A DNA stretch of 64,000 nt from Neoechinorhynchus agilis. Taxonomy: Eukaryota > Animalia > Acanthocephala. Below, one piece after another: positions 2,246-62,559 of this stretch. The DNA lies in NCBI GenBank assembly GCA_051530055.1, contig CM121343.1, positions 1,334,389 through 1,398,388 of the forward strand, given 5' to 3'. The notes beneath the pieces are model-generated. The model ran no database searches, was not told the DNA's origin, and saw only the letters and a list, made by a program, of their open reading frames with translations. The stretch's first letter is position 1. Every line of letters starts with the position of its first letter. The position numbers and the translations under genes are program-made.

Positions 2246-2249
2246 CAAT

Positions 2250-13489: not shown

Positions 13490-14154
13490 TGGGGAAATAC
13501 GACAATGATGAAAGTAAAATCGACGAAGTTCGGCAAAACATTACAGAACGTTTTCCAGATAGTCATGGAAGAGAATTCATCGGTAGCCAGCCGGTATCAA
13601 TGACAGTTAATAATATTGAAACATTGCGGCAGTTAAATTATCGAGTAAGCTAGAAGGCCGACGGAACCCGGTACTTGTTTTTCATTCGAGAGAAAAACGA
13701 AATTTATATGATCGACAGGCGCAATTCAATCTTCAAAGTTACCAATCTTACGTTTGTGACGAACCGTGGCACTACAGATCATTTTCGTCAGATTTTGCTT
13801 GATGGAGAGATGGTGGAAGATATCGTGGTGGTACACAGATTCGTCGATTCCTTATATTTGACATCCTGGCATTCAACGGGCATTTTGCTGTAAGGAACTT
13901 AATTATGTCAAACGATCGGAACTCATATGGAGGGAGATTATGCAGCCTCGATGTCGTGCTATTATCGAATACAAAACTATAGACCGAAGTCGAGAGCCTT
14001 TTCGGATTCAAAAGAAGGATTTTGCGATCTCAGGTTCAATAAAAAAATTTTGAATGAAATGTTCCAAAATGACCTCCTTCAAGCAGACGGTCTTAAATTT
14101 CAGCCCGTTGATATGCCGTATATTTTTGGCACCTTCGACAAGCTGCTAAAATAA
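13490..14154 (+). pseudogene. RNGTT: mRNA capping enzyme guanylyltransferase-domain pseudogene, copy A
   Basis: FIGSQPVSM...YRVS*KADGTRYLFFI...YMIDRRNSIFKV...LLDGEMVED matches metazoan FPGAQPVSM..YKVSWKADGTRY..FMIDRDNSVF..LLDGEMI. TGG has become TAG just before motif I (KADG at 13654-13665), and frameshifts follow. Confidence 0.9.
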
Positions 14155-14889
14155 GGCATCAATTGGTAAATTTCAATTATGTATGGGTGTTAAATTTTCT
14201 TTTGCCAGTAATAATCACAAAAATTCATCTTATCGTTTATAGAAAAATCCAAAACCCGTCAGATCAATAGTATGAATGATTTTTGGACCATAAAAACTAA
14301 AATAAAGGATTTATGTTTTACCTCTTAGAATAAACTGAAAATAATTTAGTATAAAATTGAGTGGTTTTCTTTGTGAAACAATAGATTTTTCAAGAAAGTC
14401 AATCGAATTGCATTTGTGATTAATATTGAAAATATGCGTTTTTAAAGGCGCTAAGAGATAAACAAATGGCGAAGTAAAGGATAAAATATTATTATTTTTG
14501 ATTGCACTAAAGATCAAGAATTCGACAAAATGTATGAGCGCGAATTTTTTAGTTAAAAAGTTCTTTGTACAAATAGTTCATCAATTCTGACATTCATAAG
14601 TTTCCATTTCCAGTCGATGAAATTTTGGTTGGAATAGTGATCACAAGGGGTTAAAGAGGTAAGTGAAGGTTTTTGTAAATTACGCCATTCAGCCAGCAAT
14701 TTAATTCAAAATATCCATAAAGTAGTAACAAATCCGCCGTTTTTCAATATTAGTGATAACCATAAGACTCTTAATGATGACCATGGAATCTAGTAACCAT
14801 GAAAGGGTTACGAAAAAGTGTTAATGGCATGGACATCCTGTTATTTAGGACTATTTCACGCGAGTTAGCCGTTGATATATAAAGACAAT

Positions 14890-15830
14890 CTCTTACTTAT
14901 CTATAAAAGAAGTATCATTATTAAATCTTTTCTACAGAGAGAAAATTCTTTCAAAATGATATAAACTACCTCGGTAATTGATTCAATTTGTTATTTAGGT
15001 CTTCACCAGATAGAGAATATTTTATTACGGACGTTTGGTACCTCTTCGGTTTTATCATCAGTTCCACAAACAAGGGGTACATTAGTTGTTCTTGTTAAAC
15101 GCAACATTCGACGCTGCTGCCCTTCTCTGCATCTTGGTCCGCGTGTGTTCAGCCAATCTCGTCTTAAAATTCCGGCTTGTCTGACCGATTTATTTGCGCC
15201 CTCTTTTCTGTCTCCTTGTATTTTCGGGAAATGAGATTTTCTATCCTCATGAACGGTCGAAAGTAAAATTCGCATTTTATTTTCATACCGCTGCTAGTGA
15301 TTGTCTTCGAGATTTTGTGTCGATAAATGTTGGTCTGTGAACAACTTTCCGTCAATCCAATTCGCATTTCTGTTCGATTCGGAATCACAGTCGTTTCGCT
15401 TCGACTGGTTTATCTCCCTTGGCCTTTCTTGGATATCCCAACTTGCTAAAAATTCGCTCTTATCGCTAGAGTTCGTATCTGAGGCATTTCACACTGCAGA
15501 GGCTGAAGGTTGGACGCACAATGCCATTGAAAATGTCCTTTTTTGTTCTTGTTATGGGCACTAACCCAAAGTGAATAATTGTTCATTTCCGTGGACTTTT
15601 TATAAACTGAAGTGATCATTCGTGTATCCAGAAATGGTAATCCCCTATTCAGGTCAGGCCTAGTTCAAAAATAACGATTGAAAGTCTCAAAGAAGTTTGC
15701 GATTGCGGACTTGTTGCTGAGCAATGAGAAGCACAAATGAAAGTACCACAAAGTTCGATTGGTCGCAATAATTTCTTGGATAATGATGTATGAGAATTTC
15801 ATCCATCTGAAATTGGAATCAAAGAATAAT
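14890..15830 (-). mobile_element. PLE RT-thumb/linker fragment within a 4-copy module
   Basis: PFLDTRMITSVYKKSTEMNNY resembles the PLE thumb LPFLD...VYRKPT.T..Y. Copies: ~30830-31510 (-, internally deleted), ~40780-41710 (-), ~54020-54780 (+). Confidence 0.7.
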
Positions 15831-15971
15831 TCATTCTTTGATATAGTTTTCCCCACCGCCACAGTACAATAAGAAAACGTTTTATTGTTCGAAGTTAGCT
15901 TTTTTGCATATTTCACTCATTAAAAGTTATCAAAATGATTTTTATGAGTGTTGTTTAGGTCTTGGCCTTTT

Positions 15972-16112
15972 AAATAACTTTTTATTAGCTTTTTCGAACC
16001 TCACCGGGTTTAATCATTAGTTTCTTTGTAAGTTTTTCCAATCGCGAAAACTTACAAACAAACTGATTGTGAACCCGACGAGGTTCGAAACGCCATTAAT
16101 AAAAAATTATTT
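15972..16112. ncRNA. Fold-back palindrome with two head-to-head hammerhead-like motifs
   Basis: Right arm: CTGATTG-T-GAACC-cgacga-GGTTC-GAAA-CGCC (16063-16094). Left arm on the minus strand: CTAATGA..AAACC-cggtga-GGTTC-GAAA. A perfect inner IR tttgtaagtttt/aaaacttacaaa is present. Confidence 0.6.
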
Positions 16113-16153
16113 GCCGGGCCAACACCTAAGCAACACTTCTAATCATATAACCC

Positions 16154-16414
16154 AATCCGAAAAGGCTCTCGACTTCGGTTATAGTTTTATGTTCGATAAT
16201 AGCACGACAACGAGGTTGCATAATCTCCCTCCAACTGAGTTCCGATCGTTTGTCATAATTAAGTTCCTTACAGGCAGAATGCGCGTTGAATGCCAGGATG
16301 TCAAATTTAAGGAATCTAGGAATCTGTGTACCACCCACGACATCCTCCACAATCTCCCCATCAAGCAAAGTCTGAGGAAGATGATCTGTAGTGCCACGGT
16401 TCGTCACAAACGTA
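16154..16414 (-). pseudogene. RNGTT: Guanylyltransferase fragment, copy C (lacks motif I)
   Basis: QTLLDGEIVEDVVGGTQIPRFLKFDILAFN...WREIMQPRCRAI corresponds to motifs III/IIIa. Confidence 0.85.
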
Positions 16415-16859
16415 TGTAAACAATGGAAGCCAGCCGATTCTCTTTAAAACTACACTCGTTTTTTAACTAGCATAAACCGATATGAATTATCGGACTTCGC
16501 TGTCGCATTTAAAAGCTAGATTAGAGCGATTTTGAAATTCCCGAAAAATTGTAAATCTTCTTCTTGGTGAACAATCAAACCTGTAATATTCCTCGTTTTC
16601 TAATACTTCCACACGGAAACGATGTATTCACTTAGTCAACATGAATCTCTCATAACCGATCGAGCCGAGAATTGTGCGATCATCATATTTTTTAGCGGAC
16701 TTGAAATAGTGATTGGAATTGAAAGACCGATTAAATAATGCAACACCAAGCAGTGTTCTCTTCAAAAATTAGGTAAGCATCAATTGGGAATATATTCACG
16801 ATCTAATATTAAATTCAAAGATAAATCTCGAAATGTATTTTGACTATATCATTCGTGTG

Positions 16860-17950
16860 TGTGATAAAAGTCGTACTATTACAATTAAAAAGCCGAATTC
16901 ATAGATTGTACAAGAAAACAACTCCGTCGACCACGATTACTTTGACGAAGATTTTGAAAATGTAGAGCCAATTCCAAATACAACAGGTAAGTTTAAAATA
17001 TGCTTTAAATAAAAATTAATCAAATCTTTTTAGACGACGACCAAGAAGACATTGCAGATGAAAACTCATTTGAAGATTTGCATAGCGATTCCAGTAATGA
17101 CTGGTTAGGAATGGATAATTGATATAACCAAACACATCGAACCATACCATCAAGTTATATCGATTATGTTGTTATCGCTGAAACTTCAACCGCTATCGAT
17201 TGCAGTTCAAAAGACTTTGGCAACTATTCCGATGGAACTATAGAAGGAAGAATGCGGCCAGTACGATTATATAAAAACAAAATCGACCAAAATATAAGAT
17301 TCGAAGACAGTTGGGAAAAATGCTCTCTTCGTCCGAGGAATACGACGGAAAATATATTGAAGTAACTGAGTTGAAGCCACCAGGCGCTTTATCTACTTTC
17401 AGAAGCTACGAACGGGCACATATTTCGTGGATAAGACTAATGAAACAAAAGGAGGAAGACGATAAACATACCGATTGGTCCCACGATACTAAGAAATGCC
17501 GCGATTATGATTGGAGAATTTTTCAACAGCGGTGCAAATAGGAAAATCGAACAATTACAGCTTTTCGAGTTTGATTGGAAAATTCTATTTGGGGAATCAG
17601 ATTTGCAAGAAGCAGAAGTGGAAGAAGCAGAAAATTCATTATCAGTAAATGATGATAAATCTGATGGCAGCGAAGAATCTCCAGTGCAGAAACAATTGTG
17701 ATTCGTTCATTCGACCATTACGCCAAGACGGCAGCTAAGTTATCAAGAACGATGGCGTAAACGTTGACGAAGCTTGCTACGAAACCAGTAAAAATATATA
17801 GCGTTGAAAATGATAAGGATAAACAAATAAATATTTGTAAGTCGTACCTCGACACAAATATTTGGAATGATAGTGCATTTTTTTGGCAACCCAGAAATTC
17901 CAAGTATAACTCAAATAATGCCAACAACACAAAAATCTTTGAATGATACA
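16860..17950 (+). pseudogene. Intron-containing acidic orphan coding remnant (second copy ~43320-44400)
   Basis: A canonical 47-nt intron AG|gtaagt...tttttag at 16987-17033 (43437-43483) joins DEDFENVEPIPNTT to DDQEDIADENSFED. Several stops occur downstream. Confidence 0.5.
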
Positions 17951-18521
17951 TTTTCGTGCTTTCGCTTAATGGACGAATGATTTTATGCAGGCTGCCAGCT
18001 TTACAAGCAGGTTAAATCATAGCTTCGTGGTTCGTTTATTATTTTAGTTTTGAAAATTTATGTTGAATTTTCATTTATTTCATTGCATCAAGCTATCTTA
18101 AAGCATTAATAATTATCTCAATTAGAAGAAGATTTATCGATAAATTCAAATCGTTTTCTTCGTTCAATATGGTTTCAATTAAATGCTTGGAAAGAGGAGA
18201 GATATTGGATAACGATTTCCAGACAATTTTCGTTCGCGTTGCATCCTTGTAAAAATCTAATGAAATCCTAGCAAGAAATTTTTCAATTAAATCGAGGGTG
18301 GAAATTTCCGACCAACTTACATCATGAGATCTCAAATTGAAGCTGTGTTTTTGGTGTATTTTTGAAAGTAAAATCTGATGCCTCCACATATTTCGGAACA
18401 TCACGTGCATGGTTTCCTCAATGAAAAGTAGTCAATCAGCATGCGCCAATTACCTGTCTTTGTAAAAACATAGAATTTTAATGCTAAAGTAGTTGTAACG
18501 TATTAACAACAACTAAGTCGC

Positions 18522-19814
18522 TCACTGATACGTCGATTTAAGTCAATTTTTTAAGTTGACAACGTTTTCAGTCAGTGTCCGTTTAACTTGAGCGCTGTTT
18601 CGTCGATGCAAAATTGCGCTCCTTTCATCCAACAGATCAACTTTAATTCGGACATGTCCAGTTTAAGGTTTGTACCTACTATCCCCTCCCTGAGTGATTG
18701 CGAGGTTTTGAGTGATTGTGCACAAGTTTCCCAAGGGGATCAAATGTAACATTCTATTGACGCATCAAAGTTTAAGCGTCCGGTTAGAAAAGAAGACTTT
18801 GTTATTAAAATTCCCAAAGAAGCCATGAGTACTAAATCCCCCTCGTATTTTTCGCGTAATTACTACGAGAAGTACCTACAGCCTAATGGTCGAGAGAAGT
18901 CGATGAATTTTCTGATTAAGAGGTTCTCGGTGACTAAATTCCACATTCTATTTGCCTTCTTCGACGTGGCAGGCAAAGACCTCTTTTCTAAGATGTTGGG
19001 GGAGTTAAGCATACAGTCTATTGACCTTTCCCGTAGAGTCACCTTTCTTATGAGGAATCCTCCTCAAGACCTGGATTCTGTTGACTTTCGCAAAATTGAG
19101 GATGAGTTAGGAATTAAACTGGTTAAATATTTGTTTTGACCCAATGCCACTTCCGCCTACGCCATCAATGTTCAGCCACAATCAATGTCGCCGAGAGTTT
19201 GGCTAACTCCGGCAGGGGCTTCTTTTCATACTGGGTCACTTTCGACCGATATAAGGACTTTCTCTATGACTATAATTTGATAATCTGTCAGAAGTGTTCT
19301 AGATGGGGGCACCACGAATCGGACTGTGTATTTCCCTCCAGATGCATCTTTTGTGCAGGTCCTCACCACAAATCATCTTGCTCTCACTCCGATTCTGCCA
19401 CTTGTGCAAACTGTGGCAAGAGTCATCCGGCCTTTGAACGTTCTTGCAAGTTCGTGCAAAAATACCTTGACGATTCCTTATCATCGAAGCAGCGGGTCTA
19501 CTATAATAAAAATAATAGAGAAATCTATCCTCACAAAACTCCTCTCTATCCGGACGGCTTTTCCTCAAAGGAGTTGAAGACTCAATCTTCCTATCATGGT
19601 CACAACTCTAAGCTTCCCCATAAACCTCCGGAAAAATCTTTTTTTGATAGTTTAGTATCTTCCCGCTCGACTTCTCCACTTGGTACCGGTAAAGAAGTTT
19701 CCTTTCTTTAGGACATCCTTACTTGGATTCTTTATGCTGGAACGCATAAACTAAAGAATTAAGGGACTGATTTGTGTGTTTGTTTGTATGAGGCGTGAGT
19801 TTTAATAGTAATAT
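18522..19814 (+). mobile_element. ORF1-only non-autonomous LINE derivative with 11-bp TSD
   Basis: TSD aactaagtcgc at 18511-18521 and 19815-19825, with an empty site at ~46529-46539. ORF1 (18825-19711) has three knuckles (CQKCSRWGHHESDC, CIFCAGPHHKSSC, CANCGKSHPAFERSC), one stop and one frameshift. No ORF2 is present. Confidence 0.85.
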
Positions 19815-20270
19815 AACTAAGTCGCTTGTTCCGAAACGAATTTTCACGCCTCATTAGTTGTGTGTCATCAATTTTACGGTTCAATCGACAGATAAAAATC
19901 GACCTCTTTGACACGTATCGGTATTTCAACCGTAGACTCAATCCGTTAGTGATATCGTTTGTAACGTCTCGATAAGTGTCGAAAGCGACACAGTAAAGAA
20001 TTCCCCAATCAGAATGTTGCAAGTCAGCGGGGTTTTAGTGATATGAAATGTCATAAAATTTGCAGAAATTGCGTTAATTTTTATTTGGGATTATTTAAAA
20101 ATCACCAGTCATTCGAAGCGCTGCGGCAGGTTTATAGAAACATTTTGCTTTTAAGTTACTTATCTTTTTCGTAGATAATTAGAAGACCTGATAAAGAAAG
20201 TAAAGCCTCCAAAATCTCGACTAACCGTAGTTTCCTAATTTTAGATAGTTCAGAGCTACAGATTTGAAGT

Positions 20271-21015
20271 ATGACGACAAGACAACCATTCGGGATAAGG
20301 GCACCACCAATCGAGGAAAGCGCACAATTCCTGCGGAACTACATCTCTGGTCAAGCCAATAGTTTCAGTCATCCAGATCCACCAACGTTCGACATTATTC
20401 AACAAGGGCACCAAATATATAATCCCTTCGATGATGATTTTTACCTCGATCGAGAAGTCGAAAAAATTTTGGAAAACGCAGAAGATAATACTATAAATAA
20501 TTGTGCACCTTCGCCGGTTTTGAAAATTGCTCATTTACTCATTACGATAAGGAGCCCGAAAACGAAGGATACTTCTAAACTCCACCAGGTTTCGAGAACG
20601 TGACTTTTGATGATTACGATTCTCGATCAGGAATGGACGAATATGGCTCACCTGTTCTCTATTTTGAGAATCCGGCCTTTAATCACGAGGAGTCATGGAA
20701 TGGAAACGAAGATTACTACGAGTCGTTTCTCGATTTTCAGGAATCAACCGTTATATTTAATGAGTCGTCGTTGGAATTCGAAAAATACAGCGAGTTTTTC
20801 ACTTTATTTAGTGAAATCGAGTCAAAAGAACCTCAAGGTCCTTATGTACGCCCAGCGACTTGCAAGATAATAGATTTGCAAGACAGTAGCACGCAAACGG
20901 AGCCGAATATCGTATCGAAACCTTAGAATGGATTGACAACAATAAATAATATTATTGATGCCGTTTACCAAGTAGCCGTTACGGCATTCAACTACTTCAG
21001 AATGATATTTTTCTG
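20271..21015 (+). pseudogene. Orphan acidic/aromatic ORF, copy 1 (internal deletion, frameshift, W-to-stop)
   Basis: Compared with 46987-47842: a deletion between two PPGF-coding repeats, and ccttag here versus ccttgg. Confidence 0.7.
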
Positions 21016-21412
21016 ACCATTCAAAGTTAAGTATCGATTATTAATAAAATGTGCTAGTTTTGTAACTGTTCGTGAAATTAAAAATATTTCATATTCGAAC
21101 AAGGCCTTGGCTCATTAGCACTTATACAATCATACAAATCCTTGGGAGCACTTGGTTTTTATATCACACTATTTCTTTATTTGTGGTACCCAATCCTCCA
21201 ATGTTCTAAATTTGAATTAGTGAGAGCGTTGGTAAGTGTGTACGCGAATTTAGAGGTCAGGTCAGAGATCGACGAAGCACTCCAGAATCTCTAAACACCT
21301 TTTATTTCTAGACCAAACTTCGTTGTCCTATGCGCGTAAATCTTTTCGATAAACATTCTGATATGACTCTTTCCCTTAACAGAACGAGATTTTAAAATAA
21401 AATTTGTTTTAA

Positions 21413-22260
21413 ATGAGGTGTAAGGACTGTCAATATGCGAAGGCCACGGAACCAGAACATCCAATATTCAATTTCGAAGTGCCTGGCAAGTCTTGGAATA
21501 GACTATATGTTAACTTTACAGGTCCGCGTGATGGCGTTTCGAATTTGATAATGATTTCCTCATTAACGAAATGGGCTGAAGTGATATCAATGACAAGTAT
21601 GACAGCCGAGGCAGTTATCAAGGAAATGAGGGATGTATTCGGTCGATTAGGCATTCCCGAGAAGTTAGCATTAGCTCAAATCAATTTCGACGAATCCTGG
21701 ATGGGAATAAACCCCTATCATCCAAGATCGAATGGACTTGCTAAACGTTTCGTACAAACGTTTACAAATTTAGTAATCAAATCTTAACGTCATTCCAATA
21801 GATCTTTGAAATTCCAACATGTAATGGAAATGATTATTCTTTCCGCGCTAAACTTACCACTCTACTCCACTTACCATTTGACGTGCGTTTACTTTGCTGT
21901 AATTAAAACGCATTTCATTGCTTCAACACATTCATTGTTACGCCACACTACAGTTCTTGATATCATACCGCAATACACCCTAGGCAAAAACGGGAAAAAA
22001 CCGGCCCGAGTGAAACCCTTCAATAAAAGCGCGACATATAGAAAGCGCCGTGAATAGAAGGACAGACATGACATTCAAGCGAAACAAAGAACGTTTGACG
22101 TTGGAGATCTTGTGTGCTATAAGAGGAACGATTCGTCCGGTTGGATTAAAGCAAACGTCGATAAAAGGAGTAAAAACAATAAGATTCAGTATCCCATCGA
22201 TCAAGTCAATACGCTTCTTTTCCCGGCAACTTACAAGCAATTGAATTCCTCGGATATTTT
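21413..22260 (+). mobile_element. Ty3/Gypsy integrase fragments
   Basis: CKDCQ...WNRLYVNFTGP...VFGRLGIPE...PYHPRSNGLAKRFVQTF (21413-21787), then a C-terminal FDVGDLVCYK piece near 22090-22260. Confidence 0.85.
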
Positions 22261-23500
22261 AAAACTTACAATCAAAGATGCCGAGGCCAAATCGCGCAAC
22301 CACCAAGCTCGTTCCCTGCGACATGGACGATTGCCCTGTTACAACTCAAATATGCGTCTCAGCTACTTGGGCAGCAGGCCGGAAATTTATTTGTGGTTTC
22401 TGTGCAGCCGCCTTGCTCAAACCTTGTTCTCCGGTTTCCCCCTTCCCAATAAGTACGCAAACCCTAACCGCTCCCAAACCCCACCTAATCTGCCATCACC
22501 GTGCAACCATTCTCCTTTACAAAGCCTCCGATCCCACATCAACACCCCTTCAAAAACCAGTTCTACCTCCCTTGCCTTCAATATCCGTCATCCATACACC
22601 GTTTAGCAAAAAATTTTCCATAAATAAAAAACGTGTTTATATAATCACGAGAATGTGAATTCCAGGGCTCATAGCGACCAATTAAGACGCTTAATATCAA
22701 GCCATTCACTGATAGGTTAAAACAAAGAAGCGAAAGAGAAAACGGAATGGAGGCCGGAAGCAATAGATAGAGATTCCAGGAAATGACAAAATATGAAAAA
22801 ACGACAGCATCCACTTCTATCAAAAACCAACCAAGAAGAAATTAACGAAATCGAAAACGTCCTGGGAGACCTTATGAAGAATATCTTAAGGGGTAGGAAG
22901 AGGCGAAACTTAGTGGCACATTGAAGATTCCAATGGAACTCAGCAGAAAACTTTACTTGAAGACAACTAAAAGAGAAACCAAGCGCTTAAATCCAAAGCG
23001 AACTCAACAAATCGCAGCGCAAGAAAAGGCTCAGAAAGACTGAAACGAATCGAATTTAGAAAAAAGCTAAAAAAACAACAACAAGGAGATACCTGCAATC
23101 AAATGAGATCGAGAACTTACATCAAAGTCGGAAATGTCGCAGGAACGGAGAAGTCTGATCAACGCCCACATCGCCAATAGCGGCAGCACCTGAGAATCTA
23201 ATGGAAACCAAGAGCATTCAACTTGCCAAAGAGATACAAAAAACAAATGGGCAAGATCGTTGCTGTGTCGTTTGGAAAAAAGCGTAATTCCTAGGTTTAT
23301 GCTGCGCTTACGTGGGATCCTTCGATTTACATGGAACTCCGTTTTAAAATGTAAACTGATTGCTATTAAATAAAAACTCTCTCTGAGTATACAAATTCTG
23401 ACGTTTTACAATTTTATTAAAACGCAAACACAATAAAGTTCAAGTAAAATAAGACATTCTTACAAAACAAAAACTTTTCTAGGTTTTACAATTGCTTCAT

Positions 23501-24720
23501 CTACTCTGAAAAATTTGCACCTCTGACCCAGGAATGGATTGAGGACGCAATAGGCCAGGTGGTATTTGGGATAGATTGAAATAGCTGGCTAAGAAAATTT
23601 TGAAGTCGCCTTGATGTAAACAAAAACAACCTACGAAACTTAACTGACGATGATTGGTTGAAAATTACGATACTTGAAATAGAGAACAACGCTCAGATGG
23701 AACTGACGACAATCGCAAATCGTCATATCAAAAAACTACGGAATTTCGCGGAAGGTCATATTTTCGTTTCATCAGATAATGTGACGAATGTGATCAATTG
23801 ATCCGGTATTCTTCTACCAAAGAATGTCTTGGAGTTTCATTCCTTTGGAACTGATTTCATTCTTACTACCAGAGTCAACAGACTTCAGTGCAGAATGAAA
23901 ATGAAAGAGATGGTATATGATTTGTCTAACAAGATTGACAACATACCTTTATGGAAGTTTGAAAGGGGATATACTATGGCGGTCCAAAGGAATAATAGTT
24001 TTCATTGGAATGTAACGAGGAGTATACGCGACGGATCAATTTTGAGAGGGCTGAAATCCCTGCGAGGAACGTAAACCGTAGGGACAGGACTACGATGGAG
24101 GCCATTTTTATTAAACAATTAAACACGTTCACGCATAATAAGGCCGATTACACCCTCCACCTACGCGTTCCGCCTGATATATTCACGAGGGGGGCAAAGG
24201 ATTCAACAGTGACCGTGTGAATGTATTTTAGATTCTGAAGAAGGCCAGCGAGCAGGCCGAAAATTCACGTTGATAAATTACAATCTTTCTTCGCCGAGTC
24301 CTACAATAAATGTGGAACTTATTTTCAGAAGCTGTATCAGGACCTATACGTTACATGTGGCGTAAAGGAGTGTGGTGAATGTGCCAAGTGGAAACTATTG
24401 AATGTAGGTTATCGGGTTGGCACGATTGTTATGTCTAAAGACCATTCGAAAATTGTTAAGCAGGGTAGCTCACAAACAATCCGCGAAGACAGCAAAGGGG
24501 TTGTTTATAAGCAGAAATGGGCGGTGTTACTTGTCCCAAGAATCGAGACGATTACGACAAGACGGGCATGCGATAGATGCGGAAAGTACCATAAGCGTTA
24601 GGAAATGTAAAACAGCGGTTACGGAGCGATTCGACAAAGAAGACGAGGAGAGCCAAATAAAAGTTACTTTTGTCTTCCCCACAAAACAAGAGCTGGTGGC
24701 TAATCAAACTATAACACGAT
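23501..24720 (+). mobile_element. PLE fragments (GIY-YIG C-terminus, pLTR-like segment) inserted into an M1 copy
   Basis: M1 stops at ~23500 and resumes at ~24720. NFERAEIPARNVNRRDRTTMEAIFIK is a PLE endonuclease tail, and KGVVYK occurs at ~24495. Confidence 0.7.
24230..24286 (+). ncRNA. Hammerhead-ribozyme-like motif (type I layout) just after a PLE endonuclease stop codon
   Basis: Stem I agatt/aatct; core CTGAAGA (24235-24241); stem II GGCC/GGCC; GAAA (24259-24262); stem III AATT/AATT around a near-palindromic tcacgttga loop. Confidence 0.65.
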
Positions 24721-31151: not shown

Positions 31152-34100
31152 ACCGTTCATGAGGATAGAAAATCTCATTTCCCGAAAATACAAGGAGACA
31201 GAAAAGAGGGCGCAAATAAATCGGTCAGACAAGCCGGAATTTTAAGACGAGATTGGCTGAACACACGCGGACCAAGATGCAGAGAAGGGCAGCAGCGTCG
31301 AATGTTGCGTTTAACAAGAACAACTAATGTACCCCTTGTTTGTGGAACTGATGATAAAACCGAAGAGGTACCAAACGTCCGTAATAAAATATTCTCTATC
31401 TGGTGAAGACCTAAATAACAAATTGAATCAATTACCGAGGTAGTTTATATCATTTTGAAAGAATTTTCTCTCTGTAGAAAAGATTTAATAATGATACTTC
31501 TTTTATAGATAAGTAAGAGATTGTCTTTATATATCAACGGCTAACTCGCGTGAAATAGTCCTAAATAACAGGATGTCCATGCCATTAACACTTTTTCGTA
31601 ACCCTTTCATGGTTACTAGATTCCATGGTCATCATTAAGAGTCTTATGGTTATCACTAATATTGAAAAACGGCGGATTTGTTACTACTTTATGGATATTT
31701 TGAATTAAATTGCTGGCTGAATGGCGTAATTTACAAAAACCTTCACTTACCTCTTTAACCCCTTGTGATCACTATTCCAACCAAAATTTCATCGACTGGA
31801 AATGGAAACTTATGAATGTCAGAATTGATGAACTATTTGTACAAAGAACTTTTTAACTAAAAAATTCGCGCTCATACATTTTGTCGAATTCTTGATCTTT
31901 AGTGCAATCAAAAATAATAATATTTTATCCTTTACTTCGCCATTTGTTTATCTCTTAGCGCCTTTAAAAACGCATATTTTCAATATTAATCACAAATGCA
32001 ATTCGATTGACTTTCTTGAAAAATCTATTGTTTCACAAAGAAAACCACTCAATTTTATACTAAATTATTTTCAGTTTATTCTAAGAGGTAAAACATAAAT
32101 CCTTTATTTTAGTTTTTATGGTCCAAAAATCATTCATACTATTGATCTGACGGGTTTTGGATTTTTCTATAAACGATAAGATGAATTTTTGTGATTATTA
32201 CTGGCAAAAGAAAATTTAACACCCATACATAATTGAAATTTACCAATTGATGCCTTATTTTAGCAGCTTGTCGAAGGTGCCAAAAATATACGGCATATCA
32301 ACGGGCTGAAATTTAAGACCGTCTGCTTGAAGGAGGTCATTTTGGAACATTTCATTCAAAATTTTTTTATTGAACCTGAGATCGCAAAATCCTTCTTTTG
32401 AATCCGAAAAGGCTCTCGACTTCGGTCTATAGTTTTGTATTCGATAATAGCACGACATCGAGGCTGCATAATCTCCCTCCATATGAGTTCCGATCGTTTG
32501 ACATAATTAAGTTCCTTACAGCAAAATGCCCGTTGAATGCCAGGATGTCAAATATAAGGAATCGACGAATCTGTGTACCACCACGATATCTTCCACCATC
32601 TCTCCATCAAGCAAAATCTGACGAAAATGATCTGTAGTGCCACGGTTCGTCACAAACGTAAGATTGGTAACTTTGAAGATTGAATTGCGCCTGTCGATCA
32701 TATAAATTTCGTTTTTCTCTCGAATGAAAAACAAGTACCGGGTTCCGTCGGCCTTCTAGCTTACTCGATAATTTAACTGCCGCAATGTTTCAATATTATT
32801 AACTGTCATTGATACCGGCTGGCTACCGATGAATTCTCTTCCATGACTATCTGGAAAAAGTTCTGTAATGTTTTGCCGAACTTCGTCGATTTTACTTTCA
32901 TCATTGTCGTATTTCCCCATGCGAGCTATCCAGAATGGAAGGGTATGGGTTTGGTGTTGGTTCAATGAGTCCCTTTTTGGTTTGAAAACTGACTGTTGCG
33001 TGCTGACTGCAATCCGTTTTCTACATGTTCGTCATTTGCTTTCTGCTTCGATCCATAATTTGTTTTCGTTTCAGTACTCACTACCCCTTTCGTGAGATGA
33101 TTTTGCGCTTCAGTACTGTGGATTCGAGTTATCAAATATTTCGCGAGGAAGTCTTATCTCATCAGTCAACTAAAAAGGTTTTGTCATATATTATTTGGTA
33201 TTGTATGGCTCGGATAAGCGGGCCGCATGTCCGCTCGTACTCCCGGCGTTGTATGGCCTTTTCCATGGACTTTTTATAGGTCACTGACAAGTAGTTTTGA
33301 GCTAAAGTTTGCTTTGTTCTTTTTTATAATGTTGGATGCAGAGATTTGTAAGGCCTCAAGCTTGCATAGGTTCTCCCCAAGTGAATTGGGTTTGCTAAGC
33401 AAAGTATCAGACTACTTTATGAAGAATATACGAGGTATCAATATTAGATGTGATGCAGAACTATTGATAAACACAAACCCAGATCTGACGAGCTCCGTAA
33501 TTGCCTATGATAGCAAAGCTGGAAACCGGAGAACAAGGAAAGACTCCCAATCGGTCATTCTCCTGTAAAACTCCTTCAAAGACAAGTCCCACCTCCATGC
33601 CTCAACATCCGACATCCAGACACCCCAGCAAAGATAGATGCTGGCAAGTGTATGGATCGTTCTTCTTAAATTAATAAAACGTGTTTATATATAAACGATC
33701 TCAATAATTATTACGAGGCCCCTTAAGAAAGTGTCTGCAATAAGGATTTGCAAACCTAACAAAGGAGTATTTTAATGGCGGTGGATGTTGAAGATTATAA
33801 CAACGCGGATTTGCGACTTGTGAGCTGAGATAAATTTAAGGGATGGTCAAAGACTCAACCCAAAACAGAGAGTCCAACTTTAACATTTCCCTTAGGTACC
33901 CATTGAACCCGCCTCCTATAGGCCAACAATTATACAATCCTGTATCTACTTCCGAAGATTAACAAACCCATCATTCAATAACTTCCAATTATACTCAGTT
34001 ATATGTGCTTCGATAACAGTTTATCAAAAAAGATTAATGCTTTGTTAGAATCAATCCTACAAATCTCCGGCTCGTACATTGCCCAACTTTTGTGATCGAG

Positions 34101-36314
34101 ATCAGGAAACTTAACGTCGACCAATACAGGATGTTGAAGGCCGATGGTAACGCCAACTTCACTAATATGCAACAGTCAAAAACGATTGAACTATCGCCTG
34201 ACTTACTTTCTAAACATTGCGATTTTGTTGATATGGTTTATTTAAAAAAGCGATCCATTTATTCAAAGTGTGAATGTTTCAACAACACTGAGAGCATCAA
34301 AATGCGAATTCGCGTTTTAAAGAATGGAATATCTGAGATCTTGAAAGACCGATTAAACAATGCACCACAGTGTTCTCTTCAAAAATGAGGTGAGCACAAC
34401 TAGGGAATATTATCAGGACAGTGGACCCTAAAAACCGATGGTTTATGACGGCAGACATAAAATCATTATTCACCAACATCCCACTCAAAGAAGCGACTAA
34501 ACTAACCGCGAGTTTATTACACGAGAAATGCGAACCCCCTTCCTTAAGTATCGAGGATTGGGTGACACTTATCGATTGTATGTATGCAACGGTACTTTCC
34601 TACGTTGCACCGTAGGTATTAGCCCGTCAGATAGAATTAGACTCCGCAAGGGACCTAAAGTACACGACAGCAGTCCTGTTATGCGGGCAATTCGCGTCTC
34701 TTAAAATCAGGTCATGAGAATGCTCTCAATTAGAGCCCTGAACAGCTCCGAACGGAGTTCATCCGGCAAAGACTCACTGTCAAAGAGTGGCTTAAGTTGC
34801 CCCATTGCTCTCCAAGCTTTAGCTCTCCGTCGGCTGACATCCGCACTCACCTCAGGAACGACAGCTCCCAGATAGACATACCGCTCTATCTGTTTTAATT
34901 GCTAAACGCCATTCGGCCCTTCGCCAGAGACTGTATGCGCGACATGCGGAATCGTCAAGAATTCCGTCTTTTTCGAGTTGATGGTCAAAAGGGCAAGATC
35001 GTTGCTGTGTCGTTTGGAAAAAAGCGCAATTCCTAGGTTTATGCTACGCTTACATGGGATCCTTCGATTTACATGGAACTCCGTTTTAAAATGTAAACTG
35101 ATTGCTATTAAATGAAAACTCTCTCTGAGTATACAAATTCTGACGTTTTACAATTTCTCTAAAACACAAACACAATAACGTTCAAGCAAAATAAAACATT
35201 CTCACAAAACAAAAACTTTTCTAGATTTTACAATTGTTTCATTTTCGCTAAAAAATCAGTCAGCAATTTTAATTCTGAATAAAGTCAGATTATTTCCGCA
35301 TTTCAAAATATTACCGCAGTTCCAAGGAAAAATTGATTTCCTTTTTACTTGAACCTGAATATCTCCTCACCTTGAAAAGTCGAAATGCTCGAATTCATTT
35401 CAATCACCCGAAAGAGCACATCGACGCCGTTCCAGAAAAGTGGTAAAGCGAAAATCGCACTCGATTCGACGTTGAGAAAAGAAGCCGTGTAAACACGAAA
35501 GAAACACGGTTTTCTTTTGAAGCGTCGATCGAATCGTTTTGCTTTCGTCAGTGAATTACCAACGTTTCGCGTAATATTTCGCTCGCAGTACTACGAGGCA
35601 ATGTTGTTGGCGTGACAGCGACAGCCGAGAAAGGAGAGAAGCTCCAATTTTACAGACGGTGGTGATTACACGTTTTGTACTTTATTATGTTATGATTAAA
35701 AAATGTTTTCTTTTAAATTTATAAAACGTATTTCAGACTGAAAGCGTTGCTTACAATGTATAAGATTTTGTATACGATTGACCGGAAAGCAGAAAGTACC
35801 TAAAAATAAAAGTTTGGAAAAAGCCGAATTGTTGGACTGAAATAAGCCGCTAAATTTTATTTCACTAATGATTTTATGAAGTACTAAAGAACCGCAGTCG
35901 CAAAATAAAAATTAAACGTTTTTGATTTTTTTGCTTACACTTCGCACTGAGATACTCATAGAAATTGGCTTTATTTGAGTAACTTTAGTTTGTTCTATAC
36001 TCGGCGATGGACGAACTTTTAAAGATCTTACAGTCGCACATAAATCGATTTATATCGATGTGTATCCTATTATCACACGGCTGTAAATTTTTGGGCACAC
36101 AGCCCCAGCCGTGTGATAATATGCCACACATCGATATAAGTTACCGGCCGGCCAATCTTCATAAAAAATAAATCGATTTCGAAAGTTTTGTCAATTTTGA
36201 TTTGCTTGTGAGTGATCCAGAGCGGCGGTGTGAATGATCTAACGTGTTATACAAACATAATGTTGTCTTGGTTTATTGATTATACTTACTCAATTACGCC
36301 TAAAGTAGACTTAT
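31152..36314. repeat. Right arm of the 5.2-kb inverted repeat
   Basis: Reverse complement of 10088-15257. By eye there are only scattered substitutions and one ~8-nt indel near 34080. Confidence 0.97.
32255..32919 (-). pseudogene. RNGTT: Guanylyltransferase pseudogene, copy B (mirror of A)
   Basis: Same stop and frameshifts as copy A; ITELFPD here versus ITERFPD in A. Confidence 0.9.
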
Positions 36315-37226
36315 ATTTGTTGAAAATGTGTACTGGGCGCAAAATTACAATAGTGAACTCAAATGCAACATATGATTTAAATTACATTTTGTTAAAATGT
36401 AATTATGAAAGTCCCCATAAAATGCAATCAATGTAGCGACCTATTTCACAAATACATTTCGTCTCTTTGCAGGATAAAGGGCTGCCAGAAGAGAATCCAT
36501 CGACATCTTAAAAATGTCTTAAAGTTTTTGCCTTCATTTCTGACATTTCCAGCATTTAATTCTGGTGTTCCGGTTGGAAAATAATAAATGTTTATTGGTT
36601 TTTCGCGATGGTGCACCAATTACTCTCTATCTCTGATATCCAATAGCATTTTCACCAACATAATCCAGTTCCAGATCCGGTATAAACATCATAAAAGACT
36701 TCCTTCATCTTTGATTTCCACGGAATTCACTGAAAAAAGAAAGGGAGGGTTCACGTAGTTATACGAAGAACGTTTCTATAGCTTATTACAACGTATCAAA
36801 TGCTTTTACGCTACCCTCTCACACTGTTCTTAAAATCTCGGAACTATTTTTTACAAGAGATTGGTCCGAGATTGTTGATCTCCGGAGATTCTCACGATGC
36901 TTTCTAACTCCATCTCAACCTAGATTGAAATCTGTAATTGGCTTCTCTGGAGGCTTACAATCTTTTATCTTAAGAAAATGGAAAGCGAAACTTCTCATAC
37001 AAGAAGAGAACGGTGATTTTGCCTATCAAGTTCTATCGATGATCAATCCCTCTTATTCACTCTTTCCTTCTCTAGGAATGCACTTGATCATTGCTAATTT
37101 TTATGTTGCACCTTCTAGGCCCGGACTTTGATTGAAGGTCCCGCCCGGAAATCAGAAAAAAGAGAATCGCAAATTATTTTGCGGAAATTCTCAATTCGCC
37201 ATTATCGTCTTTGGAAGTGAGTCCTG

Positions 37227-38150
37227 CACGTCGTCGGCATATGCCATGTAGGAGGCGCGTATCTCAGGATACCTGCGACCTCTTTTCTTCAACAGAAGAA
37301 ATCCATCTTCATCATTCGGTAGTGCCCATCTCATTACCCAATCAAGCACCAAGATGAAGAGGAAAGGAGCCAATTTGTCGCCCTGCAGAACACCTGAAGT
37401 GGTGGAAAAGTTTTCTGTCAAACCGTCAGCTGTCTTTACGGCGGACCTTGTGTTATTATATAATGCCATAATGGATGTGACAACGATCGGCGCACTCCAT
37501 ACTCCATTAAGATACCGCCAATCATCGTTCGATTTACCGAATCGAAAGCTCGACGGAAATCAACAAATACCAGCGTCACATTCGTTCGATAAATTCGTGC
37601 CTCCTCGAGGATCCTCCTCAAATCCAATATGTGCTCTGTCGGGCCTCGACCTTTCCTGGAGCCGTTCTGTTCAATTCTTAGAAACGGTTCGAGGATCGGC
37701 TGAATTCGGCGTCTCAAAATACTGCTGAAAAGTTTTGCCGTGTTGGACATCAAGGATATACCTCTGTAGTCCTCCACCTTTGTCGACTAGCATATCTTGG
37801 GGATTATTGTTAAATGCACCGTTTGCCAGATTTGAGGTACTGAGCCACCATTTATTATGCTATTCATTATCGGTATGATCTTCCCGGCAATAGATTCAAA
37901 CCTCAGTACCTCTGCAATTATCCCATCTGGACCTGATGCACGTCCCGCACGCATCATTTTCACCGCAGTTAATGGATTTGTGAATCTTCTTTATGAGGGG
38001 AAGGTCCCAGGCCGACTGCTTGTGATCATTTTCCGGAAGGTGCGGAATCTCTGTCCGGGATTGCCAAATCGATAAACCGTCCAAATAATGTTGCGAGTTT
38101 TGTCTCATGTTGGAAAGGGCTTCTGCGTACGTTTTGCTGACTCGGTAAGA
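37227..38150 (-). mobile_element. LINE RT N-terminal half (RTE-like)
   Basis: YRGISLMS, EQNGSRKGRG, VFVDFRRAFDSV, GVLQGDKLAPFLFILVLDW, MAYADD. Confidence 0.9.
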
Positions 38151-38293
38151 GGCGAGGAACGCTTACATGTTGTAAAGAATATCTTCATCTCGAAAAAAAG
38201 AAGCTAAAATCACTGCCTCCCATATTTGAATTATTACAATACGAAACCATATAATCTCGGTCTTTTAACGAGAAATTGAACATAAATTAATGA

Positions 38294-39070
38294 TGTCTTG
38301 GATTATTATCTTCGGGGGAAAAGATACTTTCTTTTAGTAGCTATACAAACCCGGATGTAAATTCCTGGATTTATTGCCGATATTTCGTCGGATAATTCTG
38401 ACATTATCAAGACTTATCATCTAAAACACAAGCGCACAAGTGTTATCCTGAGGACTCGTCTGTGAAACGTGGATAAGACGATCATTCTGTACGATACAAA
38501 GGTGGGCAACCTCGCAGGCATCCTTAAAAATAAGCCAAAATATGAGCAACATGAAGTTGTATACGAGGGCCGCTGCAAAGATTGTCCAACCAAATATGCG
38601 GGACAGACGAAACAAGGACTCAGCAAAAGGATCGCAAAACATAGATATGAGTGTAGGCGTTATGATGCTTCCTCAGCTATAGCCAATCACATGCTGAATT
38701 GCAAACATCAAATTGATTTTGATGACGCGATTATCATAAGCGTACAACTAAATTTAAGAAAAATCGACTAATAATGGAAGCCATCGAAATAGGCTGCTCA
38801 GTTCAACCTATGGAAGGCAAAAAAGCGAGCATCAGTTTGAAATTACCGATGAGAAAACAATGGTGCTCTTCTCCGGAGGTTTTAGTGGACAAAATGTCCA
38901 GAAACAAGGGTTTCTCGATCATATCGTATGATAATAACTAGTCTGCAGAATAACACTTGTGTGCTTGTATTTTGGATGATAGGTCTTGATAATGTCGGAA
39001 TTATCCGACGAAATATCAGCGATAAATCTATGAATTTAGATCCGGGTGTGTATAACCATCAGAAGAAAAT
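38294..39070 (+). mobile_element. 5'-truncated PLE (GIY-YIG) flanked by ~117-bp inverted pLTR-like repeats, inserted in a LINE
   Basis: VVYEGRCKDCPTKYAGQT...SAIANHMLNCKHQIDFDDA. IR arms at 38342-38458 and 38938-39054. Imperfect TSD aatta(a)atga. Both arms carry CTTGATAA-T-GTC(G/A)G-aattat-CCGAC-GAAA-TATC. Confidence 0.8.
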
Positions 39071-39076
39071 AATTAA

Positions 39077-39800
39077 ATGAGTTATTTGTTGAAGAAAAAT
39101 TCTATTCACGGATTTATCCCTGGTAGGGGTGTTCATACCCTACTAGAAGATCTTAACACTACGAATAATGATTTTATTAATGTTAATAAATTTTTACTTC
39201 AGTTGGATCTCAATAAGGCTTTCGACTGTGTTAACCGTAACGTCATTTATGAGGCTTTAAATTTTCCCTAAATCCCAATTGATCTAATCTTTAAAATTAA
39301 TAAATTAATAGAATCCAAATCTTTTTACTATGAGGTGGACCCTGATGGTACTTAACTGACTTTCCTCCTCTCACCGAATGCCTTGAAACTATTTTCATGA
39401 AACAATCAAAACGCCTCTCAGCCCTACCACCACAATATCTTCAACATATCGCTCCTTTTTCACATGAGCACAACACTCGAAATCCTAATTCGTTTTACCC
39501 TCCTTCGACCTCGCACCACCCTATACTTGCGCTCCTTTTTCTGTGCTGCCGAATCTTCGGGAATATCATACCTTGAAATGAACCTGAGGAAATACCAACC
39601 TTACAAGCGCTTCTGCAAACAATAACCACCAATTCCCATCAGAACGGGCCTTCCAACCCAACTGGATATTGCCGCCTGCCCGGACTCGTAATCCGCTCCA
39701 AAATAATTTGTTCAATCAGAACTCGAGTGTTTATGAGGACCCAAAGGTACAAGGATCCTCTTCCTTGTGAATCAACTAATAAAACGTGTTATTATTATAA
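39077..39800 (+). mobile_element. LINE RT fragment plus 3' UTR-like end
   Basis: HGFIPGRG...LQLDLNKAFDCVNR, then a C-rich tail, a hairpin and AATAAAACGT. 39505-39790 is related to 53690-54005. Confidence 0.7.
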
Positions 39801-39829
39801 CTACCTCGCTTCAAATCTTTTTATTTACA

Positions 39830-40170
39830 ACAAACAGGGCGCATCCATTGCGGGTATTCTCAAGAGGAAAAACAAACAAGAGACCAAATCAGGGATCTAC
39901 AATATTCCATGTGCGGAATGCTCAAGTGTATACATTGGACAAACTATGCAAGGGATCAAGAAACGGATCTCGCAGGATAAACAGGCTTGCAAGACTTTCG
40001 ATAAATCCTCAGCAATTTCGAACCACCAGCAAACAATCCAACACAATGTGGAATTTGGAAAAGCGGCAAACTTACCCGCGAACCGGATCTAAGAAGAAAA
40101 CTGATTCTTGAGGCCATTCACATCTGAGGAAATCCGACGATGGAAGGCAAAAAATCAAACCAAAAACTGA
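39830..40170 (+). mobile_element. PLE GIY-YIG endonuclease fragment
   Basis: SGIYNIPCAECSSVYIGQT...SSAISNHQ...LEAIHI. Confidence 0.88.
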
Positions 40171-42453
40171 AGCTGCTCGAAATTGTAACAAGATGCATTT
40201 AATTTATAATACTTGAAGACCAGGAATCGCACTTATTACAAAAAAGTAGTTAACAAGCGGGGCACTCGCAATTCTGCTTCTTGAGAACAAATTTTTAGGA
40301 TTTCTGGAAAAGCCTAAAACGACCTCTTTTACTAAGTATCGATGAAATCATGGAAGTGCTCGCGTTCCTTTGTCCAATTGTCACAAACAGACATTAAAAT
40401 ATGGTTTTATTTCCTGACTAACAATTAAAATCAAAAATCTATTCGGTAGCGTTTTCGTTTTCTTCGTTCAACGGAACGCTCCTTTCAGAAGTCTTCTTCT
40501 CCAAAATAAATTTCATAAAATCCATTCTAGAACTTCTCCAATCTGGAGCGTCCAAGCGAACATTTGTTGGCCTTGCATCAAAATAACTTAAAACATCCTT
40601 TCCAGCCAAAATATTCCTTTGTTTGCTAGATTTAAATTGCTCCCTCGCTCGCTCCATTCTGCGACTACATGGCCAACTGTGAATAACCAAAGACGATTTA
40701 AGAAACACTCGTTTGCAGAATTCGCATTCCTGACGCACATCCTCTGGTGTATCATTGCGGTCACTAAATCAATTTTGGTTAATAAAAGACTCTAATTTCA
40801 AATGGACGAAATTATCCTACCTCATTATCCAAGAAATTATTTCGACCAATCGAACTTTGTGATACTTTCATTTGTGCTTCTCATTGCTCAGCAACCAGTC
40901 CGCAATCGCAAACTTCTTTGAGACTTTCAATCGTTATTTTTGAACTAGGCCTGACCTGAAATAGGAGATTACCATTTCTGGGTACACGAATGATCACTTC
41001 AGTTTATAAAAAGTTCACGGAAATGAACAATTATTCACTTTGGGTTAGTGCCCATAACAAGAACAAAAAAGGGCATTTTCAATGGCATTGTACGTCCAAC
41101 CTTCAGCCTTTGCAGTGTGAAATGCTTTAGATACGAACTCTAGCGGTAGGAGCGAATTTTTAGCAAGTTGGGATATCCAAGAAAGGCCACGGGAGATAAA
41201 CCAGTCGAAGCGAAACGACTGTGATTCCGAATCGAACAGAAATGCGAATTGGATTGACGGAAAGTTGTTCACAGACCAACATTTATCGACACAAAATCTC
41301 GAAGACAATCACTAGCAGCGGTATGAAAATAAAATGCGAATTTTACTTTCGACCCTTCATGACGATAGAAAATCTCATTTCCCGAAAATACAAGGAGACA
41401 GAAAAGAGGGCGCAAATAAATCGGTCAGACAAGCCGGAATTTTAAGACGAGATTGGCTGAACACACGCGGACCAAGGTGCAGAGAAGGGCAGCAGCGTCG
41501 AATGTTGCGTTTAACAAGAACAACCAATGTACCCCTTGTTTGTGGAACTGATGATGAAACCGAAGAGGTACGTAACGTCCGTAATAAAATATTCTCTATC
41601 TGGTGAAGACCTAAATAACAAATTGAATCAATTACCGAGGTAGTTTATATCATTTTGAAAGAATTTTCTCTCTGTAGAAAAGATTTAATAATGATACTTC
41701 TTTTATAGAAAGTAAGAGATTGTCTTTATATATCAACGGCTAACTCGCGTGAAATAGTCCTAAATAACAGGATGTCCATGCCATGAACACTTTTTCGTAA
41801 CCCCTTCATTGTTACTAGATTCGATGATCATCATTAAGAGTCTTATGGTTATCACTAATATTGAAAAACATCGGATTTCTTACTACTTTATGGATATTTT
41901 GAATTAAATTGCTGGCTGAATGGTGTTATTTACAAAAACCTTCACTTACCTCTTTAGCCCTTTGTGATCACTATTCCAACCAAAATTTCATCGACTGGAA
42001 ATGGAAACTTATGAATGTCAGAATTGATGAACTATTTGTAAAAAGAACTTTTTAACTAAAAAATTCGCGCTCATACATTTTGTCGAATTCTTGATCTTTA
42101 GTGCAATCAAAAATAATAATATTTTATCCTTTACTTCGCCATTTGTTTATCTCTTAGCGCCTTTAAAAACGCATATTTTCAATCATAATCACAAATGCAA
42201 TTAAATTGACTTTCTTGAAAAATCTATTGTTTCACAAAGAAAACCACTCAATTTTATACTAAATTATTTTCAGTTTATTCTAAGAGGTAAAACATAAATC
42301 CTTTATTTTAGTTTTTATGGTCCAAAAATCATTCATACTATTGATCTGACGGGTTTTGGATTTTTCTACAAAAGATAAGATAAATTTTTGCGCTTATTAC
42401 CAGCAAAAGAAAATTTAACACCCACACATAATTGAAATTTACCAATTGATGCT

Positions 42454-42865
42454 TTATTTTAGCAGCTTGTCGAAGGTATCAAAAAATATATGGCATATCA
42501 ACGGGCTGAAATATAAGACCGTCTGCTTGAAGGGGGAGGTCATTTTGGAACATTTCATTCAAAATTTGTTTATTAAACCTGAGATCGCAAAATCCTTCTT
42601 TTTAATCCGAAAAGGCTCTCGACTTCGGTCTATAGTTTTGTGTTCGATAATAGCACGACAACGAGGCTGCATAATCTCCCTCCATATGAGTTCCGATCGT
42701 TTGTCATAATTAAGTTCCTTACAGGCGGAATGCCCGTTGAATGCCAGGATGTCAAATTTAAGGAATCTAGGAATCTGTGTACCACCCACGACATCCTCCA
42801 CAATCTCCCCATCAAGCAAAGTCTGAGGAAGATGATCTGTAGTGCCACGGTTCGTCACAAACGTA
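42454..42865 (-). pseudogene. RNGTT: Guanylyltransferase fragment, copy D (lacks motif I)
   Basis: TLLDGEIVED...PRFLKFDILAFNGH...REIMQPRCRAI...IDRSREPFRIKKKDF, compared with the human IDKTQEPFSVRNKPF. Confidence 0.9.
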
Positions 42866-62535: not shown

Positions 62536-62559
62536 TGCTTCAAAAAGCCCATGATAAAA

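Follow-up and report, generated by a model that had tools for sequence, protein, structure and literature searches.

Disabled mRNA-capping guanylyltransferase fragments and the duplicated blocks that hold them in the acanthocephalan Neoechinorhynchus agilis

Results

Guanylyltransferase fragments in the window

The window considered here, a stretch of 64,000 nucleotides from the acanthocephalan Neoechinorhynchus agilis (CM121343.1:1,334,389-1,398,388, assembly GCA_051530055.1), contains four segments which a preliminary description had read as disabled copies of an mRNA-capping guanylyltransferase domain: A (13490-14154, + strand), B (32255-32919, -), C (16154-16414, -) and D (42454-42865, -). 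All four do translate to the nucleotidyltransferase domain of a guanylyltransferase. The matches of A and D to the Pfam family mRNA_cap_enzyme (PF01331) are far above chance level, with E=1.1e-48 for frame-corrected A over profile positions 1-192 of 194 and E=7.5e-27 for D over positions 58-192, the only portion of the profile spanned by C and D. Copy A, which is covered by no annotated gene, retains motifs I, III, IIIa, IV and the start of V in canonical order, with interdomain linker before them.

None of the copies contains an uninterrupted open reading frame (ORF). As previously reported, A and B carry a stop ahead of motif I, where the reading NYRVS*KADGTRY reflects a TAG in place of a Trp codon. 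They further contain at least three frameshifts, and two 1-nt deletions are private to this pair, being absent from C and D; in copy A the lesions comprise the TAG before KADG, the two private deletions and one more frameshift. Copies C and D had been described as cleaner across motifs III/IIIa, and translation and alignment bear this out: free of the two deletions of A and B, they stay in a single open frame there. Motif I, with its catalytic lysine, is missing from both, again in agreement with the earlier account, and D is also frameshifted.

The A/B and C/D sequences part exactly at TACGTTTGTG (sense strand), as first proposed, at 13748/13749, 16414/16415 and 42865/42866. The same breakpoint recurs outside the window in a fifth, D-type guanylyltransferase fragment at 1,263,981-1,264,388 (locus L002), ~84 kb upstream of copy A.

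DNA comparisons took in the window and the N. agilis loci examined (e.g. L001, L002, L006, L007 and L008) rather than the whole genome. On this basis, the homologous stretch exceeds that originally delimited and includes a linker remnant on one side and the gene's 3' flank on the other. In copy A, the remnant of a long linker rich in Lys, Ser and Arg ('NYGSKQKANDE') lies at 13315-13381 (+) and matches the paralogue loci L006 (10450-10515) and L007 (9995-10060) at 90-91% (blastn); the same motif is found in the N. agilis proteins P0052, P0053 and P0135. The end of the linker and the nucleotidyltransferase-domain pseudogene matching PF01331 follow at 13494-14154 (+), with 87-89% DNA identity to L006/L007. 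From 14150 to ~14545 (+), copy A retains the 3' flank of the paralogue, matching sequence past the stop codon of both L006 (12147-12433) and L007 (11666-11963) at 76-81% (blastn).

The codons for LLK are thus joined straight to the gene's own 3' flank, a ~508-bp internal deletion having taken the OB domain, and the linker was also shortened by a ~345-bp deletion relative to L006/L007. Truncation of the gene by a Penelope insertion at 14154 was considered and ruled out, as the gene's own 3' flank follows the deletion. Neither the OB domain (PF03919) nor motif VI gave a match in the window, downstream of A included, with the OB domain of P0008 as query at E<=1e-3 and in relaxed searches. The triphosphatase domain (HCxxGxxR) was likewise without a match in the window in a tblastn search with residues 1-190 of P0053 and P0054, a search which detected it in loci L005 and L006 and, in part, in L007.

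Copy B is the twin of A, with its linker remnant at 33028-33094, domain at 32255-32919 and 3' flank at 31994-32259 (31994-33094 overall, -; blastn to L006/L007). Copy D (42118-42865, -; PF01331, E=7.5e-27) runs from the TACGTTTGTG breakpoint to LLK (42454-42865) and on into 3' flank (42118-42458), while C (16154-16414, -) holds motifs III/IIIa only and is truncated at both ends. The copies have lesions in common, and these are nested: all carry the OB deletion, and private frameshifts came later. Since this deletion is common to B, D and the L002 copy, one already-dead ancestor stands behind all five.

The RNGTT family of N. agilis

RNGTT, the metazoan capping enzyme, is normally single-copy, intron-rich and essential in animals. 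An exhaustive profile search with copy A placed four N. agilis proteins far nearest (68-69% and 53-55% identity), with other species at 44% or below. The canonical enzyme is P0054 (ACOME3_009513, 597 aa), whose gene, a single exon of 1794 bp, lies ~3 Mb away on CM121343.1, at 4.379 Mb (L005, 3001-4794). Its motifs are intact (P-loop HCTHGYNRSG, KADG, DGEM, DGLIFQP, KWKP, RIRSDK), as is its OB domain. A second protein, P0055 (421 aa), consists of guanylyltransferase and OB domain only; it too is encoded by a single exon, among ordinary genes in a gene-dense region of CM121341.1 (L009, 6001-7266), and its motifs are intact except for a change of K to R in motif VI.

The remaining members show various degrees of decay or truncation. 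P0053 (L006, 1.633 Mb, 255 kb from the window) is full-length with an expanded Lys/Ser/Arg-rich linker, and its locus has acquired frameshifts, WEADG for WKADG and a loss of the P-loop arginine. P0135 (L007, 1.430 Mb, 52 kb from the window) marks a near full-length copy of the same kind, which lacks the first ~100 codons and keeps to a single frame interrupted by at least seven stops. P0052 (L008) and P0008 (L001), on unplaced contigs, constitute a third group with linker, guanylyltransferase and OB domain. Members of the subfamily represented in the window occur on CM121343.1 at 1.264, 1.348, 1.351, 1.367, 1.377, 1.430 and 1.633 Mb. RNGTT in N. agilis is thus an intronless, multi-copy family, of which the long-linker subfamily has been repeatedly duplicated along CM121343.1, most of its copies being in decay.

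A neighbour-joining tree, built without bootstrap support from the N. agilis copies and enzymes of Seison, insects and other animals, places every N. agilis sequence in one clade, with other animals outside at 40-44% identity; the window fragments are sister to L007 and, one node deeper, to L006. By sequence, the copies are pieces of a guanylyltransferase of host (metazoan RNGTT) type.

Some further features of these loci were recorded. The flanks around the near-identical paralogues of L001 (13696-18240) and L008 (5577-10132) are 98% identical, and the two contigs are probably uncollapsed haplotigs. Directly upstream of both paralogues lies a tandem array with a period of ~120 bp (L001 ~9390-9770, L008 1-357), where homology to motif I degrades. 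Over the decaying paralogues, hypothetical-protein models have been annotated: ACOME3_008883 (L006, 10001-12081), ACOME3_008844 (L007, 10001-10694) and ACOME3_010455 (L001, 10001-11586), whose short introns appear to have been placed to bypass stops or frameshifts. These three are pseudogene-derived or antisense models.

The same probably holds for ACOME3_008825 (KAL7668110.1, 160 aa; 16279-17365, +) within the window. Its exon model, rebuilt here and confirmed by an exact look-up match, has introns of 506, 47 and 51 nt, and its first exon is antisense to copy C. It contains no Pfam domain and forms a singleton in 90% clustering, which says nothing on copy number; we take it to be probably an artefactual or non-coding antisense transcript model.

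Absence of introns

The preliminary description had remarked that no intron interrupts the domain in the copies while a 47-nt intron occurs nearby, and both observations are correct, the latter intron being that of ACOME3_008825 at 16987-17033. As a sign of retrocopying, however, the missing intron fails, for the canonical P0054 and the paralogue P0055 are themselves single-exon, and every paralogue examined is intronless across the domain region. It had been suggested that the functional host gene be found and its intron positions compared; the gene was found (P0054), but being intronless it leaves such a comparison without power, and the absence of introns is uninformative on retrocopying. 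Other hallmarks were also sought. No poly(A) tract was found where homology stops on the 3' side of L006, L007 and the window copies, at points which differ among the three, and no target-site duplications were noted at the copies, although these were not searched for systematically.

Duplicated blocks

The four cannot be counted as independent copies: A and B represent a single copy within an inverted duplication, C and D a single structural variant. The A block (10088-15257, +) pairs with 36314-31152 in inverted orientation, with 99.71% identity over 5171 bp in self-blastn (partner 31152-36314; 5.17 kb at 99.7%). Past 15257 homology continues at just 88%, so that the inverted A and B blocks may to some extent have undergone gene conversion. 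Copy C opens the block 16154-21138, whose counterpart at D (42604-47974) is colinear with it over at least 5 kb. The D block (39356-47974, +) is a multi-kb mosaic unit which shares 40788-42865 with the A block, 42604-47974 with the C block and 39356-44425 with L002. Between A and D, 13749-15820 corresponds to 42865-40788 at 96%, and the L002 fragment belongs to a unit at least 5 kb long, with 96-97% identity to window 39356-44425, although its true end is obscured by the insertion of a long terminal repeat (LTR) retrotransposon. Upstream of the breakpoint, the flank of the C/D type and that of the A/B type have a 76-bp piece in common and nothing more, an overlap which rules out the D type as a simple deletion derivative of the A type.

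Identity within the window is 96-99.7% between blocks, and 91.6% between copy C and A/B over the domain. Between the window and L002 it is 96-97% for blocks; relative to A, it is 89% for L007 and 87% for L006, and for the unplaced contigs it is 78-81%, so that similarity drops with chromosomal distance; no DNA similarity of the window copies to P0054 or P0055 was found. The features of segmental or tandem duplication are therefore present: multi-kb blocks (5.2 kb at 99.7%, 2-8 kb at 96-97%) which include non-genic mosaic flanks, clustering on one chromosome and distance-dependent identity. Block ends vary between copies. For comparisons among the fragments, the ratio of non-synonymous to synonymous substitution rates (dN/dS) lies at 0.55-0.69, in line with a relaxation of constraint as far as the few sites allow, while the ratio of 0.27-0.42 relative to L001 mirrors past constraint in the RNGTT family.

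Penelope-like sequence beside the copies

A module of Penelope-like elements with a 'thumb' region had been reported next to A, B and D. A remnant resembling the GIY-YIG nuclease does adjoin all three, but the thumb was not confirmed. At A, it is a 5'-truncated 3' remnant at 14887-15820 (-), tail-to-tail with the copy, with the GIY-YIG motif IGQTSRNFKTRLAEH at ~15230-15000, inside a repeat piece spanning 14887-15649. It runs on the strand opposite to A, 730-1080 bp past the 3' end of that copy, and has been co-duplicated at B, D and L002. Its similarity to the full-length Penelope ORF P0049 is weak (pairwise E=4e-5) and it has no Pfam match; its end at 14887 would be placed as expected for the 3' terminus of a Penelope element whose nuclease is C-terminal.

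The same Penelope 3' piece also occurs without guanylyltransferase, at 54014-55144 (-), where it is 96.7-97.4% identical to 14887-15649 and 40960-41721 and where homology stops at the equivalent of 14887; the piece that recurs from beside A occupies 54014-54775. Next to the copies in L006, L007, L001 and L008 the window-type piece is not present, and the unit common to the window and L006/L007 is the gene with its 3' flank alone. Among the loci examined, the junction of Penelope and guanylyltransferase sequence is found in five copies, all within 113 kb.

No Penelope reverse transcriptase accompanied by GIY-YIG was found on the copies' own transcript strand. A short reverse-transcriptase-like fragment ('DIKSLFTNIPL') 1.5 kb upstream is antisense too, and a word-index search with it returned no match. 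A query concatenated from the Penelope fragments matched P0048 and P0049 alone, the latter so far diverged that remnants of reverse transcriptase in the window could not be mapped with it. Stop-masked frames of 10088-13500 gave no match in Pfam, the fragments there being too broken.

Penelope remnants occur at roughly one per most of the 10-20 kb loci examined, the gene-dense P0055 locus included, and in another acanthocephalan, P. laevis, 8.9% of the genome consists of Penelope elements. Given such a frequent background, proximity to a Penelope remnant says little.

The palindrome between A and C

Copy C had been said to start near a hammerhead palindrome. The palindrome is real, and only 16 bp from C, but no hammerhead model matches it. 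It occupies 15947-16137 (no strand assigned), where the A and C blocks meet in inverted orientation. Its arms carry a degenerate CTGATGA...GAAAC-like core, and it matches its own inverse at 76%; over its ~190 bp the predicted DNA fold is -54 kcal/mol (z=-12.4). The hammerhead models of Rfam failed to match whether the gathering score, a threshold of E<=5 for the window as a whole, or one of E<=10 for the regions 12900-16700 and 62200-62560 was applied; all that these searches returned was spurious microRNA-hairpin matches on palindromes. The pattern CTGATGA..CGAAA has three matches relative to 0.64 expected, none with a convincing helix II. A related copy of the palindrome lies at 62383-62495, the two belonging to a small repeat family with very stable hairpins.

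Discussion

Origin of the fragments

All four stretches are functionless remains of a single decayed copy, which belonged to a lineage-specific RNGTT paralogue of the long-linker subfamily; they are inert and encode no enzyme. We consider it likely that this dead fragment was multiplied by local segmental duplication at the DNA level. Under this reading, the ancestor would first have lost the triphosphatase domain, part of the linker and, by the 508-bp deletion, the OB domain, while keeping ~390 bp of its 3' flank. The dead fragment would have had as its neighbour, on the opposite strand, a 5'-truncated insertion of Penelope unrelated to it, and then have been copied passively as multi-kb blocks duplicated. 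A rearrangement at TACGTTTGTG may have split the A type from the D type, with D giving rise both to C and to the copy at 1.264 Mb, and A to B by a recent inverted duplication or gene conversion.

The preliminary description had instead proposed a retrocopied or captured fragment amplified as cargo of a composite repeat. Its structural half stands in part, in that disabled pieces of host type are indeed passengers in multi-kb mosaic blocks which hold a Penelope remnant; the Penelope or retrocopy mechanism is unsupported. The two sequences lie on opposite strands, poly(A) and hammerhead are lacking, the Penelope piece stands alone at 54014-55144, and L006 and L007 are without the junction. What had been named as speaking against the cargo proposal, namely an intronless parent with copies explained by local duplication and no general association with Penelope, is largely what we observe.

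Several points nonetheless weigh against local duplication as an account of these data. The family presents a series of 5' truncations such as retroposition yields, from the full-length L006 through L007, shorter by ~100 codons, to L001, L008 and P0055, which are without the triphosphatase, and the unit common to L006 and L007 is gene-sized (~2.5 kb), as with retroposition. In L001 and L006, other remnants of Penelope are found no more than a few kb from the copies. Read along the sense strand of Penelope, the C block has the look of a 5'-truncated copy and stands head-to-head with the A block, and head-to-head, inverted, 5'-truncated partners are an arrangement known for Penelope elements. 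Copies bearing the junction with the same Penelope piece could also exist on other chromosomes, the comparison having covered the loci named above. Finally, the assembly being a hybrid, Hi-C-scaffolded one, the A/B pair, at 99.7% identity, could be an assembly artefact.

Mobilisation by Penelope itself would entail an opposite-strand element reading through its 3' end and carrying the antisense guanylyltransferase flank along in 5'-truncated composites. Such a process would account for the constant end of the remnant (14887), which A, B, D and L002 all show at 730 bp from the guanylyltransferase, and for a C block which, in Penelope sense, starts inside the guanylyltransferase and faces A across the palindrome; inverted 5'-truncated partners are typical of Penelope, and these elements are abundant in acanthocephalans (again, 8.9% of P. 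laevis). We nevertheless find it improbable. The carried segment would need to exceed 6 kb, no single 3' end is visible across the blocks (though that of L002 is obscured by the LTR insertion), and all five junction copies fall inside 113 kb of one chromosome, while the piece at 54 kb lacks guanylyltransferase and L006/L007 lack the junction. No hammerhead was detected, and the nuclease remnant is itself weakly supported.

Retroposition could alternatively have acted earlier, with RNGTT mRNA copied by the reverse transcriptase of a long interspersed element (LINE) or of Penelope to found the paralogue units, and local duplication later multiplying the ancestor of the window copies. All family members seen are intronless, their units are gene-sized with ~520 bp of 3' sequence and 5' ends cut to varying extents, and some lie on other chromosomes or contigs; moreover, since metazoan RNGTT genes are normally intron-rich, the intronless canonical P0054 may itself be a replacement retrogene. 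Yet the units show no poly(A) at their 3' limits, L006, L007 and the window end at different points, and the subfamily forms a cluster within ~370 kb of a single chromosome, while an intronless parent removes the usual diagnostic; we regard this course of events as unlikely. Capture from a large DNA virus with a metazoan-like capping enzyme, also raised at the outset, is very improbable. In its favour, some of the top matches are guanylyltransferase-only proteins without a triphosphatase, but the fragments nest in the one N. agilis clade of the tree, together with the canonical triphosphatase-guanylyltransferase-OB gene, their upstream linker is homologous to that of bifunctional animal enzymes, and no viral genes were seen in the flanks.

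Comparison with known systems

Measured against the bifunctional RNGTT of metazoans, copy A agrees in motif order and linker, and is matched best by animal RNGTT, the N. agilis paralogues foremost; the window copies differ in lacking the triphosphatase, the OB domain and motif VI, in their stops and frameshifts and, for C and D, in the missing catalytic lysine motif. Clusters of duplicated (unprocessed) pseudogenes formed by birth-and-death evolution offer a close parallel, with clustering on one chromosome, co-duplicated non-genic flanks and nested lesions. They differ from the present case in that the N. agilis parent is intronless, which makes a processed and an unprocessed origin of the founding copies indistinguishable, and in that the blocks are in mixed orientation with palindromic junctions.

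Likeness to Penelope-like elements with pseudo-LTRs, inverted 5'-truncated partners and hammerheads (Craig et al. 2021, PMC8557442) is seen in the GIY-YIG remnant, the inverted blocks and the palindromes. Unlike in those elements, 730 bp and a change of strand separate the guanylyltransferase from the remnant, no in-frame reverse transcriptase adjoins and no hammerhead was detected. In 3' transduction by LINE-1 and other mobilisation of host sequence by retroelements, similarly, a host fragment just past the 3' end of a retroelement recurs with it, but here the copies have no common 3' end or poly(A), are all local, and the segment is too long.

An attractive account of a capping-enzyme domain as retroelement cargo thus gives way to ordinary pseudogene decay within local duplications. 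The expansion of RNGTT is itself mildly unusual, comprising a canonical gene without introns, a guanylyltransferase-only paralogue which is intact, and a subfamily in decay. It gives a hint of retrogene replacement and of turnover within the gene family, in a parasite known in other respects for losing genes (PMC12690905). There is a small chance that the expansion is more than junk, with the guanylyltransferase-only paralogue in a new role or, as exon 1 of ACOME3_008825 is antisense to copy C, with fragment-derived antisense or small RNAs acting on the family, or else that Penelope read-through moved the fragment.

Other features of the window

Beyond the guanylyltransferase blocks, one of ten window ORFs compared by exact look-up, that at 21413-21787, corresponds to an annotated N. 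agilis gene, and locus L004 is identical to window 11413-31787. A GC-rich island at 2000-6000 (0.49-0.52, relative to ~0.38) holds a 352-aa ORF at 4267-5325 (+), for which we found no Pfam or PDB match, no exact record and no gene annotation. Window 2484-2764 recurs at L002 1-281 with 98.6% identity, and the island repeat could be an endogenous mobile or viral element. At the far end, a 48-bp satellite of ~28 copies (79% match) occupies 62656-64000 and runs off the window.

Debris of mobile elements is scattered at 11431-11700 (+), ~39000 (+), 193-636 (-), 1416-1814 (+), 38535-38762 (+) and 39838-40074 (+). It includes fragments of LINE reverse transcriptase (thumb and motif A), gag-like ORFs and two further GIY-YIG remnants, and one piece is 95% identical to part of the N. 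agilis protein ACOME3_008807.

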